DNA of 64,000 nucleotides. Source: Haliotis cracherodii. Taxonomy: Eukaryota. A program made the translations under genes and the position numbers. Below, in pieces: positions 4,248-58,077 of the stretch (within the stretch, counting starts at the first letter, position 1; every line of letters begins with the position of its first letter). The notes below the pieces were generated by a model. The model had not been told where the DNA came from. It did no database searches and saw only the letters and a list, made by a program, of their open reading frames with translations. Location: contig NW_027266269.1 in the NCBI RefSeq assembly GCF_022045235.1, positions 25,544,001 through 25,608,000 of the forward strand. Direction: 5' to 3'.

Positions 4248-7200
4248 ATGGCAGCCCTTCTTCTTTATATTGCGGCCATATTGTTCAGCGTTGGTGTGAT
4301 CGGGAGACAACTTGCAGGTTAGTCTGTTTCAGTTCCGGTGTTAGTGTGATCGAGAGAAGATTTGCAATTAGCTTGCTAATGGTCTGGTGTTTGTATGATC
4401 AAAGGTAGATTTCTGTCCTGGTGTTTATGTGATCGGGGAGAACACTTGCAGGTTAGCCTGTTTCTGTCCTGGTGTTTGTGTGATCGGGGGGAACACTTGC
4501 AGATTAGCCTGTTTCTGTCCTGGTGTTTCTGTGATCGGGGGAACACTTGCAGGTTAACCTGTTTCTGTCCTGGTGTTTATGTGATCGGGGGGAACACTTG
4601 CAGGTTAACCTGTTTCTGTCCTGGTGTTAATGTGATCGGGGAGAACACTTGCAGGTTAGCCTGTTTCTGTCCTGGTGTTTGTGTGATCGGGGGAACACTT
4701 GCAGGTTAGCCTGTTTCTGTCCTGGTGTTTATGTGATCGGGGGGAACACTTGCTGGTTAGCCTGTTTCTGTCCTGGTGTTAATGTGATCGGGGAGAACAC
4801 TTGCAGATTAGCCTGTTTGTGTCCTGGTGTTAGTGTGATCGGGGAGAACACTTGCAGGTTAGCCTGTTTCTGTCCTGGTGTTTATGTGATCGGGGGGAAC
4901 ACTTGCTGGTTAGCCTGTTTCTGTCCTGGTGTTTGTGTGATCGGGGGAAACACTCGCAGGTTAGCCTGTTTCTGTCCTGGTGTTTATGTGATCGGGGGAA
5001 ACACTTGCAGGTTAGCCTGTTTCTGTCTTGGTGTTTGTGTGATCGGGGAGAACACTTGGAAGTTAGCCTGTTTCTGTCACGGTGTTTGTGTGATCGGGGG
5101 AAACACTTGGAAGTTAGCCTGTTTCTGTCTTGGTGTTTGTGTGATCGGGGAGAACACTTGCAGGTTAGCCTGTTTCTGTCCTGGTGTTTATGTGATCGGG
5201 GGGAACACTTGCAGGTTAACCTGTTTCTGTCATGGTGTTTATGTGATCGGGGGGAGCACTTGCTGGTTAGCCTGTTTCTGTCCTGGTGTTTATGTGATCG
5301 GGGGAAACACTTGCAGGTTAGCCTGTTTCTGTCCTAGTGTTAGTGTGATCGGGGGAAACACTTGCACGTTAGCCTGTTTCTGTCCTGGTGTTTATACGTT
5401 AATGATAAAGCTACGCACAAATTTAGACAAAAGGTTACTGTGGGTCAGTGTTCTTGTTAGCCGTAGAAAGCAATATTCAGGCTGCACCAAGTAGGAATAC
5501 AGGTAATCGATTCGGACTGGACAATTAGTGGTAGGTACTATTAATGACACATGTTATTGGGACACGAGGACACAAACTCATCAATATTACACATTATAAC
5601 CTCTGTCTTCATTAAAGAGAGGGGGCAGGGGTGGCCCAGTCGTCTAAGGCGCCGCTATTCGCTGTGCAGAGCTGTGTCCCTTGGGCAGGCCAAAAACCTA
5701 TGGTTGTGGGTTCGAATCCCGGTTCGCCCCGATTATGTTTCTAGGTTTGCCAGCACCATACCCGTGCTCGTGGGTTTCACCGAAGTGGTAAACGTCTAAG
5801 ACCTGCATCACTTCGGGCTTTCCTCCAAAATTAAGCTGACACGCCACGATATAACTGGAATACTGTTAAAAGCGGCGCTAAACCCAACTCACTCACTCAC
5901 TCACTCACTCACTCATTAAAGACGGTTCTTGGGGTATTTGGGACCTTGTCTACCCAGGAATCGTCTCAAGGGTTTAGTTTACTTTTATGATAATGAAGCA
6001 GAAATATTCATAACTATACCTGATTCTAGATGAGTGTCGACAACACGGTGGAACCTGCTCTTCTCATCACAGTGGTTGCCATCATATATTTCGGTCCGCC
6101 GACTGCCATCATCAACACGGCCACGCCCACCTGTGTTGTGTTGGACAACACCCCTTGACACAGCCTACAATAGGTGACCCCTTGCACTATCTTATGCAGT
6201 ATCATTAGACCTGCATGTGTTATATCCCATTTTGAGGGGTCACAGGTGGCCCAGTCGTCTAAGGCGCCGCGATTCTCGGCTGTGCAGAGTTGCGTCCCTT
6301 GGCCACGCCAGAAACCTATGGTTTTTGGTTCGAATCCCGGTTCGTCCTGATTATGTTTCTAGGTTTGTCAGCACCATACCCGTGCTCGTGGGTTTCACCG
6401 AACTGGTTCACGTCTGAGACCTGCATCACTTCGGGCTTTCCTCCCACATTAAGCTGATATAACTGGAATACTGTTAAAAGCGGCGTTAAACCCAACTCAC
6501 TCACTCATGATCACTCACTCACTCAATTCAAACCTACATAAACAATTTTACCACAGGAACAGACAGATGCTTGCAAAGACAAAATCCACAGAATGAAGTG
6601 TCAGGGTATACCACGATCTCTTATTTACAACATATTCTTCGCTTGTGAAGGACTTCGTATGTCATTTATCGCACTGTTTTTTCTCGACAGATGTAGCAAC
6701 TGCTATTCGAACACAATCCATCCAGTATAGCAATCCAAGTAAGTCATACATACATATTCATGTCATTTATTCCCTATTTTGGCTTGTATTCATGCGTGAA
6801 ATATGAATGGGTCGGGGTAAAATAGTGATAATCCACACAAACCTACTTTTGAGATAATTGATTTTCAAAGTTTGATAATTTATAAAAATATTAGTCTTCA
6901 CTTAGACCTGAGATTTCTCTCAAAACATCCTCTTCAGAAAGCATGCGTTCGGCCATGATTTTCTGGCTTGTCACGGTCTTGCCAAGATGGCACTACATAC
7001 ATGTGACTTATCACAAATATGGAGATAATGCAATTCTGCACCTAACCAGCAAAGGGGAGATAACTCACGTTTCTTTTGTTATACTGGACCTTGCAACCCA
7101 CAAAACATAATTATCTAGAAAAAACTTGATGCATGGGTTATCAATATCTTACCCCGACCTGTTCATATAATATCTTGAGGGCGGTCGGGTAGCCTAGTGG

Positions 7201-57900: not shown

Positions 57901-58077
57901 AACCTCTCATTGCAGGGAGACTCCGGCGGCCCCCTGGTGTGTAAAACTGGTAGTGTGTGGAAACTGGCGGGTATTGTTTCCTGGGGGTACGGATGTGGGG
58001 ACAAAGCGACACCCGGTGTCTACACGCGAGTGTCCTCATTTCTAAGCTGGATTGAAGGTGTCAAGGCTAAATACTAG
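48950..58077 (+). CDS. SP4: secreted trypsin-like serine protease, paralog of SP3; 7 coding exons, 318 aa
   Basis: Exons 48950-49013 ([21 protein letters not shown]), 50778-50945 (6-Cys module), 51236-51309 (GHCG..SR|IVGG), 52029-52117 (ATAAHC), 52963-53222 (HDIALV..PACLP), 56324-56463 (GKDACQ), 57916-58077 (GDSGGP..TAG). 957 nt; AATAAA at 58086. Confidence 0.92.
52255..52520 (-). mobile_element. Family C copy
   Basis: Reverse-complement match. Confidence 0.85.
53739..56059 (+). mobile_element. Decayed mariner transposon in SP4 intron 5, carrying a minisatellite and two nested SINEs (A 55426-55595, C 55712-55944)
   Basis: 3' TIR GAGGCTCTGCACTTTCAATCACCCCTCGTA matches decayed 5' TAGAGAGTTGATTGAAGGTCTGTGCCTC; remnants GVPKLL (WVPxxL), [10 protein letters not shown] (TGDETWVHH), [24 protein letters not shown]. 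Confidence 0.8.
54270..55148. repeat. ~42-48-bp minisatellite derived from mariner transposase sequence
   Basis: Unit CCACCACCACCAAAGAAGGCAAAGACTGTCCAATCACCTGACA ([12 protein letters not shown]). Confidence 0.92.
56458..56962. repeat. 33-bp minisatellite (~15 units) starting at the SP4 exon 6 donor
   Basis: Unit CAG|GTGAGCTGATTACAAAACTAGGTGAGGATCTTATCC; first unit is the real TGTCAG|GTGAGTTGATTACAAA. Confidence 0.93.

Follow-up and report, generated by a model that had tools for sequence, protein, structure and literature searches.

A mollusc-wide six-cysteine prodomain with a predicted beta-defensin fold on a tandem array of abalone trypsin-type proteases

Introduction

The extracellular protease cascades of arthropod immunity and development depend on clip prodomains, which precede the catalytic domain in enzymes such as the horseshoe crab proclotting enzyme, Easter and Snake of Drosophila, and the insect PPAFs and PAPs. 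Clip modules (Pfam CLIP, PF12032) are some 40-55 residues long, contain three disulfides with the cysteines C5 and C6 adjacent, sometimes occur in tandem, and fold into a beta-sheet flanked by helices, with a long C3-C4 segment. To our knowledge, no equivalent of the clip-protease system has been described as such for molluscs; a scallop serine protease, CFSP, is reportedly expressed in haemocytes and induced by Vibrio, and the title of a 2007 paper on it (Zhu et al., Fish Shellfish Immunol 22:556) announces a serine protease from a mollusc whose N-terminal domain is clip-like. Here we analyse a stretch of 64,000 nucleotides from the abalone Haliotis cracherodii (RefSeq assembly GCF_022045235.1, contig NW_027266269.1, positions 25,544,001 to 25,608,000 of the forward strand), hereafter called the window, which holds four tandem genes, SP1 to SP4, for secreted trypsin-type proteases that carry six-cysteine (six-Cys) modules in front of their catalytic domains.

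As far as sequence and modelled structure can tell, the design of these proteins is clip-like in layout and uses a different, beta-defensin-like module, and the module is not a member of the CLIP family. Our best explanation, which we hold with a probability of about 70%, is that the window contains an array of four secreted trypsin-type zymogens (family S1A, Asp189), three of which, SP2 to SP4, belong together with a fifth gene, SP5, to a single mollusc-wide lineage with a putatively tethered prodomain of predicted beta-defensin fold.

Results

All four protease genes lie on the + strand, are intact and have GT-AG at every intron. Their exons were located by motif scans and paralogue comparisons and then joined, which yielded four complete open reading frames (ORFs). 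SP1 (4248..16048) has 8 exons and codes for 316 amino acids, as defined by its splice sites and reading frame; SP2 (16586..25721) has 8 exons and codes for 427 amino acids from the ATG at 16586 or 419 from the ATG at 16610; SP3 (28229..38140) and SP4 (48950..58077) share one layout of 7 exons and code for 319 and 318 amino acids, respectively. In each protein, a hydrophobic N-terminal signal is followed by one six-Cys module (two in SP2), a low-complexity, Pro/Thr/His/Ser-rich linker, a Cys within a CG pair, the activation cut Arg|IVGG and the S1A domain, and alignment places His57, Asp102, Ser195 and Asp189 in all four. This is the layout that a preliminary description of the locus had read from the sequence, and the complete models, the canonical splice sites and the catalytic residues in 4/4 genes bear it out, as they do its likeness to clip proteases in having an N-terminal three-disulfide module, a linker, a putative tethering Cys and R|IVGG.

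For the database searches, exons were used individually, SP2 to SP4 additionally through the database proteins that match our models (P0164, P0160 and P0163, in this order), and the joined SP1 protein entered local comparisons only. Pfam Trypsin matches the SP2 to SP4 proteins with 220-229 bits, covering residues 195-419 in SP2 and 88-312 in SP3; residues 1-87 of SP3 carry no Pfam annotation.

The modules are each encoded by a single exon. In SP2, module a with its linker occupies exon 2 (18027..18236, 210 nt) and module b with its linker exon 3 (18830..19084, 255 nt), after which exon 4 (19906..19988) encodes the putative tethering Cys (TCG), the cut NHR|IVGG and the start of the protease domain. 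In SP3 and SP4, module and linker share exon 2 (29173..29340 and 50778..50945, 168 nt each), and exon 3 brings the Cys and the cut (31491..31564, QCG and PAR|IVGG in SP3; 51236..51309, HCG and VSR|IVGG in SP4). The linker between the modules and the protease of SP2 is a long Pro/Thr/His/Ser stretch, and that of SP3 a His/Pro/Thr stretch. Including the His-rich six-Cys exon of SP1 (exon 2, 6030..6173, 144 nt), all module exons are of phase 1-1 and the signal exons end in phase 1, and therefore gain, loss or duplication of a module can occur in frame; the module duplication in SP2 is indeed in frame.

Cysteine spacings are 6,6,8,9,CC in SP1, 7,6,11,5,CC in SP2a, 7,6,10,5,CC in SP2b and 7,7,10,5,CC in both SP3 and SP4, with GxC at C2 in 5/5 modules and CGF at C4 in 4/5, exactly as first described. 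A pattern scan over all collected proteins and the four window models returned 86 module instances, 85 of which have the spacing 7, 6-9, 10-11, 5, CC, the lone outlier being SP1. Heterodont bivalves have a 10-residue C2-C3 loop (7,10,10,5 variants) that this pattern misses. An alignment of 48 rows shows no variation in the six Cys or in the Gly that precedes C2, and very little in the Gly behind C3 or the Phe that follows C4-Gly. The family conforms to the beta-defensin framework C-x(4-8)-C-x(3-7)-C-x(9-13)-C-x(4-7)-CC with Gly-x-Cys at C2. Its core comprises about 38 residues, with a net charge of -3 to +2 (median -1) over the 86 instances.

When the whole genome (1.18 Gb in an 80-contig assembly) was searched with a four-row and with a 13-row profile, both found five modules, four in the window and one 9.2 Mb away on the same contig, and all five precede trypsin exons. 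With the four-row profile, SP2a scored 83 bits, SP2b 87.7 and SP4 89; with the family hidden Markov model (HMM), the four modules of SP2 to SP4 span 36-66 bits (SP2a 35.6, SP2b 56.3, SP4 65.8). The distant fifth module belongs to SP5 (C6:34725214-34725390 and downstream, minus strand, loci L005-L008; XP_071098341.1, 338 amino acids), which combines one module of spacing 7,7,10,5,CC with a complete trypsin domain.

When 1.84 billion representative proteins were searched with a profile, 16 matched at E<0.001, and those with a named source all come from molluscs (Haliotis, Pomacea, Elysia, Mytilus, Sinanodonta, Potamilus, oysters, Mizuhopecten and Solemya). Two full-length members used as queries added Patella, Littorina, Nucella, Babylonia, Reishia, scallops, Pinctada, unionids and heterodont clams, and such a full-length search also found a module-bearing member in the chiton Liolophura. 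The scallop members are 333-359 amino acids long, and the Reishia member goes by the name of 'capsule gland specific secretory protein'. A search with the P0001 module alone, by a method that requires shared words, returned only P0001. Among the 120 relatives of the protease domain that were listed, many are TMPRSS9-, ovochymase- or prostasin-like by name, and none carries PF12032.

Some members depart from the simple architecture. In three metagenomic proteins (P0041, P0042, P0053), a ShK domain (PF01549) stands between the module and the trypsin domain. In Mytilus edulis, the protein CAG2219381.1 (P0005, named 'PLG', 567 amino acids) has the module ahead of two kringle domains, two EGF domains and several Ig domains and lacks a protease. 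This could mean that the module also moves among proteins other than proteases, or else that the gene model is an artefactual fusion.

We then placed the proteases in a maximum likelihood tree (quick method, LG+G4) of 168 trypsin domains cut by pattern, from which P0160, P0163 and P0164 were omitted as duplicates of the window models. The 57 domains that were scored as carrying a module all group within a single clade, which has 71 tips and a support of 98 in the Shimodaira-Hasegawa-like approximate likelihood ratio test (SH-aLRT). Thirteen of the clade's other 14 tips were inspected (P0025_d3 is the tip that was not); they are mostly N-terminally truncated models, whose first residues lie within the module or shortly behind it, or the heterodont variants with the long C2-C3 loop, and P0059 has a different Cys-rich start. 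Because the module-bearing proteases form a single clade, the fusion looks ancient and vertically inherited.

The fold of the module was predicted by AlphaFold2 from the SP3 module exon, with alignments of 13 and 48 rows. In both models, residues 3-8 form a helix, residues 11-14, 24-27 and 35-40 form strands and the linker is disordered, with a predicted local distance difference test score (pLDDT) over residues 1-40 of 74-83 and 81-88, respectively; the predicted fold is that of a beta-defensin, a short N-terminal helix with a three-stranded antiparallel sheet. Compared by VIA-align with 48,161 PDB representatives, the two models had only 14 and 13 chains at Z of at least 2, and all but one of these are beta-defensin-fold peptides. 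The best neighbours were crotamine (Z 3.4-3.5) and the defensins hBD6 (3.0-3.1), hBD4 (3.0) and hBD2 (2.8-3.0), the latter with a root-mean-square deviation of 1.6-1.9 A over 35-36 residues. A Z of at least 2 was also reached by avian and crocodile defensins, a SCRiP, sea-anemone peptides, helianthamide and a platypus defensin-like peptide. The lone non-defensin chain, Cypridina luciferase, we regard as spurious, as its aligned residues are scattered. Foldseek lists the same families first (E 2-6, target template modelling score up to 0.64), and in the ESM Atlas the nearest cluster to the SP3 module is Defensin_beta, with a weak score of 0.76. No clip-containing chain appeared at Z of at least 2 among the PDB representatives or in the Foldseek lists, although the absence of a weak match is no proof. 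The enrichment of beta-defensin-fold neighbours around these predicted structures is striking and reproducible despite weak absolute scores.

Known domain models are silent on the module. Pfam gave no match, at E up to 10, to the five module exons of the window, CLIP, Defensin_beta (PF00711) and Defensin_big (PF14862) included, nor to the modules of 13 family members, and in seven full-length homologues it matched Trypsin on the protease part and nothing on the module. A sequence search of the PDB with two module profiles returned no match at E 10. Scanned in six frames with the CLIP model, the whole genome yielded no canonical clip domain; the two matches obtained (L009 and L010, E about 0.7) both lack the cysteines and were rejected. 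The Defensin_big model found nothing above the cut-off in the genome, and its best tandem matches (L012 and L013) are not that domain. In the openly available literature we found no description of the module, and a limpet mucus study and a mussel expression atlas held nothing specific on the family.

SP1 stands apart. It has a signal, the His-rich six-Cys exon, a short linker, QCG...GRR|IVGG and an intact S1A domain, and Pfam Trypsin matches four of the five exons tested (exons 4, 6, 7 and 8). It shares 34-41% identity with SP2 to SP4, and in the tree of 168 domains its protease falls outside the module-bearing clade. Its exon 2 has canonical splice sites and agrees in phases and position with the other module exons. 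Against the module family it reaches an hhalign probability of 3% and, with the family HMM, 1.1 bits (E 38); it has no paralogue in the genome and no match in the ESM Atlas. Ten His among its 35 core residues could bind metal. Judged by sequence, SP1 is a distant trypsin paralogue whose six-Cys prosegment seems real and is either unrelated or unrecognisably diverged, and its homology to the other modules is not demonstrable. The preliminary description had treated all five modules together; this holds for SP2a, SP2b, SP3 and SP4, and SP1 cannot be recognised as a member of their family.

The genes of SP2 to SP4 are already known to annotation, and their prodomain is an unnamed domain that occurs mollusc-wide. 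SP3 is identical to XP_071098222.1 (P0160, 'transmembrane protease serine 3-like'), SP4 is identical to XP_071098792.1 (P0163, 'chymotrypsinogen A-like'), and our SP2 model, taken from the second ATG, is a suffix of XP_071097919.1 (P0164, 'mast cell tryptase-like'). In a separate GenBank record, ALP00203.1 of H. discus hannai ('serine protease', 318 amino acids) is 93% identical to SP4, module included. The H. rubra model P0029 begins inside module a, in the equivalent of SP2 exon 2, and continues into module b, and the H. rufescens read-through model P0161 contains an SP2-like unit with two modules, an SP3-like and an SP4-like unit in the same order. Together, these records from RefSeq and from three other species show that splicing joins the module exons to those of the protease, and the records from other Haliotis species show the cluster to be older than these species.

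SP3 and SP4 are 76% identical overall, and this similarity is unevenly distributed. The last exon with about 500 bp of the upstream intron (37484-38139 in SP3, 57424-58076 in SP4) is 96% identical, with a rate of synonymous substitution (dS) of 0 in the coding part, and the module exon (29159-29377 and 50764-50983) is 92% identical with a dS of 0.14, as compared to a dS of about 1.4 in the rest of the protease domain. The uneven dS therefore suggests that gene conversion has homogenised parts of both genes, leaving mosaic tracts. We accordingly rejected the SP3-SP4 similarity as evidence of selection, since the low dS of the module points to gene conversion, and conservation across molluscan classes is the better evidence of constraint.

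The remaining exons of the gene models are as follows. SP1 has its exon 1 at 4248-4317 and exons 3 to 8 at 7432-7523, 9235-9323, 10199-10313, 11837-11978, 14277-14419 and 15893-16048. SP2 begins, from the second ATG, with exon 1 at 16610-16664 and has exons 5 to 8 at 22210-22298, 23334-23596, 24534-24673 and 25557-25721. In SP3, exon 1 is at 28229-28292 and exons 4 to 7 are at 33315-33403, 35354-35616, 36617-36756 and 37979-38140; the corresponding exons of SP4 are at 48950-49013, 52029-52117, 52963-53222, 56324-56463 and 57916-58077.

The window contains nine runs of N, and those listed within the gene spans are all intronic: 8354-8547 and 8676-8841 in intron 3 and 12036-12272 in intron 6 of SP1, 31569-32386 in intron 3 and 33705-33943 in intron 4 of SP3, and 51505-51662 and 51680-51874 in intron 3 of SP4. 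Only one exon adjoins a gap, exon 3 of SP3, where the run starts 4 nt past a donor that is itself complete (CAG|GTAT). Over every gapped junction the trypsin domain aligns without a lost segment, and no reading frame crosses a gap.

Repeats are abundant in the window. In SP2, a 76-bp unit repeated 10.4 times (24642-25435) starts from the donor of the exon before the catalytic-Ser exon, and the exon 7 end (GGKDACQ) recurs in each copy together with its GTAAGT donor. The array of SP4 (56461-56950), made of 12.5 copies of a 39-bp unit, starts from the CAG|GTGAG donor of the exon before the catalytic-Ser exon. Further large intronic and intergenic minisatellites lie at 4410-5395, 12915-13882, 20054-21943, 41321-44423, 45237-47664, 54271-55148 and 60616-63682, examples being 33 bp x 94 at 41321-44423 and 38 bp x 81 at 60616-63682, and they give rise to the long spurious ORFs in the ORF list. 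A short interspersed repeat occurs in introns in both orientations (17702-17992, 18290-18590, 19110-19290 and many other places), and its recurring translation dominated an all-against-all comparison of the ORFs. No other genes were seen: the ORFs of at least 130 amino acids outside the four genes all lie in repeats or across gaps, the intergenic DNA not having been searched further.

Discussion

The most economical reading of the sequences and models is that the module serves a zymogen of trypsin specificity as a tethered domain for recognition or regulation, and not as an antimicrobial peptide that is released. A trypsin-like activator would cut at R|IVGG, after which the module and the Ser/Thr/Pro/His-rich linker would stay on the active enzyme, attached by a disulfide between Cys122 and the Cys that precedes the cut by about 10 residues, an arrangement known from chymotrypsin and from the clip proteases of arthropods. 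The proteins have six cysteines in each module, a single one in the linker and nine in the protease domain, and the nine protease cysteines leave Cys122 unpaired, such that it could be the partner of the linker Cys. A single event of exon shuffling in an early mollusc probably brought the module to this lineage. The big defensin genes of oysters have their beta-defensin-like domain on an exon of its own (PMC3182236), and by analogy this makes an origin by shuffling of a defensin-type exon plausible.

Several points weigh against the tethered defensin-fold prodomain as we propose it. The structural scores are weak (Z no higher than 3.5, Foldseek E about 2), as is expected for a domain of 38 residues, and AlphaFold may be biased towards defensin folds by this very cysteine pattern. 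We found no link of the module to any defensin at the level of sequence. The RefSeq models derive from the same assembly as ours and hence are not independent of its gaps. The disulfide between the linker Cys and Cys122 is inferred from cysteine counting only, and disulfide pairing in general, tethering, the role of the module and its physiological function are likewise what we infer.

One competing idea starts from the layout that the genes share with clip proteases, namely six Cys with adjacent C5 and C6, a linker, a tethering Cys and R|IVGG, and holds that the module is a diverged arthropod clip domain and that the genes are a molluscan branch of the clip proteases in an immunity, melanisation or clotting cascade. 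We consider this very unlikely, since the Pfam CLIP model misses every module and homologue even at E 10, since its only two matches in the genome are devoid of the cysteines, and since PF12032 is found on 0 of the 120 protease-domain relatives listed. Moreover, no clip chain reaches Z 2, as opposed to a dozen beta-defensin-fold peptides, and the C3-C4 loop of 10-11 residues is shorter than what is generally known of clip domains. Of the preliminary description, which had proposed a candidate clip-type system built on a defensin-fold fusion with a possible antimicrobial role, membership in the CLIP family is therefore not supported, as Pfam CLIP matches no module and no clip chain is found among the structural neighbours, and the beta-defensin and big-defensin models fare no better with the modules. 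The fusion family in molluscs is upheld by the profile searches and the Haliotis records, with its fold as a prediction, and so is the joining of module to protease exons, by the RefSeq models and ALP00203.1.

The antimicrobial role deserves a closer look, because the beta-defensin-like predicted fold and the cysteine framework, together with encoding by a single exon as known for the beta-defensin-like domain of oyster big defensins (PMC3182236), would fit a module that is a true antimicrobial peptide derived from a big or beta-defensin, freed by cleavage of the low-complexity linker, which could be cut, and delivered along with the protease in gut or mucus. To this we give small odds. Oyster big defensins are cationic, with isoelectric points of 8.6-9.2 (PMC3182236), as opposed to a core charge of -3 to +2 with a median of -1 in the 86 module instances; SP2 to SP4 have no dibasic processing site before or after the module, the Defensin_big and Defensin_beta models fail to match, and no big defensin was detected in this genome. 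The neutral or anionic core and the position upstream of the putative tethering Cys thus make a released cationic peptide unlikely, and the module would stay on the enzyme.

A different objection is that the defensin-like model might reflect the cysteine pattern alone, the module being a convergent, disulfide-rich extension of the activation peptide that stabilises the zymogen or helps to secrete it without recognising anything. This would be in line with the weak structural scores, with the missing sequence link to any family and with the unrelated six-Cys stretch that SP1 has in the same slot, which suggests that the slot tolerates any small knot. It is hard to reconcile with the retention of the Gly before C2, of C3-x-x-Gly, of C4-Gly-Phe and of CC-x-Pro across chitons, bivalves and gastropods, with the duplication of the module in SP2, and with its place at the head of the Mytilus kringle/EGF/Ig protein without a protease, which would befit a mobile functional domain. 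We therefore deem convergence of this kind highly doubtful and retain the tethered beta-defensin-fold prodomain as our explanation.

A bolder proposal, which we regard as rather unlikely, is that the family is the molluscs' own counterpart of the clip proteases: an ancient, monophyletic group of trypsin zymogens in which a tethered prodomain of beta-defensin fold would direct the enzyme to microbial, matrix or zymogen targets, in a cascade for immunity, clotting or the hardening of egg capsules, the defensin fold having been recruited independently of the clip domain. Irrespective of this, a hitherto unnamed, mollusc-wide prodomain can now be defined by its cysteine signature, its predicted beta-defensin fold and an apparently single origin on one protease lineage. 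A new domain-family entry would be justified, because under their current names (chymotrypsin-, tryptase-, kallikrein- or TMPRSS-like) the N-terminal 60-190 residues of these proteins have no explanation. For molluscs, among which are several farmed or endangered species, the family is a tangible candidate for targeted proteolysis, and it would provide an example of a defensin fold put to use as a domain that stays tethered instead of as a free peptide.

How, then, do these proteases compare with the systems that they resemble? With the arthropod clip proteases they share the secreted zymogen with its N-terminal three-disulfide module, a linker with a putative tethering Cys, the activation cut after Arg or Lys before IVGG, and the S1A domain. 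They differ from them in that the abalone modules have no CLIP match, a shorter C3-C4 loop and a fold that is predicted to be beta-defensin-like, and in that the module family was found in molluscs only. Of the extracellular activation cascade in which clip proteases act, only the R|IVGG zymogen site can be seen in the abalone genes. With beta-defensins and big defensins the module has in common the six-Cys framework ending in CC, Gly-x-Cys at C2, a length of about 36-40 residues and the encoding in one exon, and the models add the predicted N-terminal helix with three antiparallel strands, for which beta-defensins are the best structural neighbours. In contrast to the defensins, it matches neither PF00711 nor PF14862, is not cationic, heads the propeptide of a protease and lacks the hydrophobic N-domain of big defensins. 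The third parallel is chymotrypsinogen with its Cys1-Cys122 disulfide: the abalone proteins, too, have a Cys just upstream of the activation cut as well as Cys122, and by cysteine count the prosegment should stay disulfide-bound after activation. Unlike in chymotrypsinogen, however, the prosegment that would be retained on the abalone enzymes includes a folded domain together with a long linker of low complexity, which is probably glycosylated.

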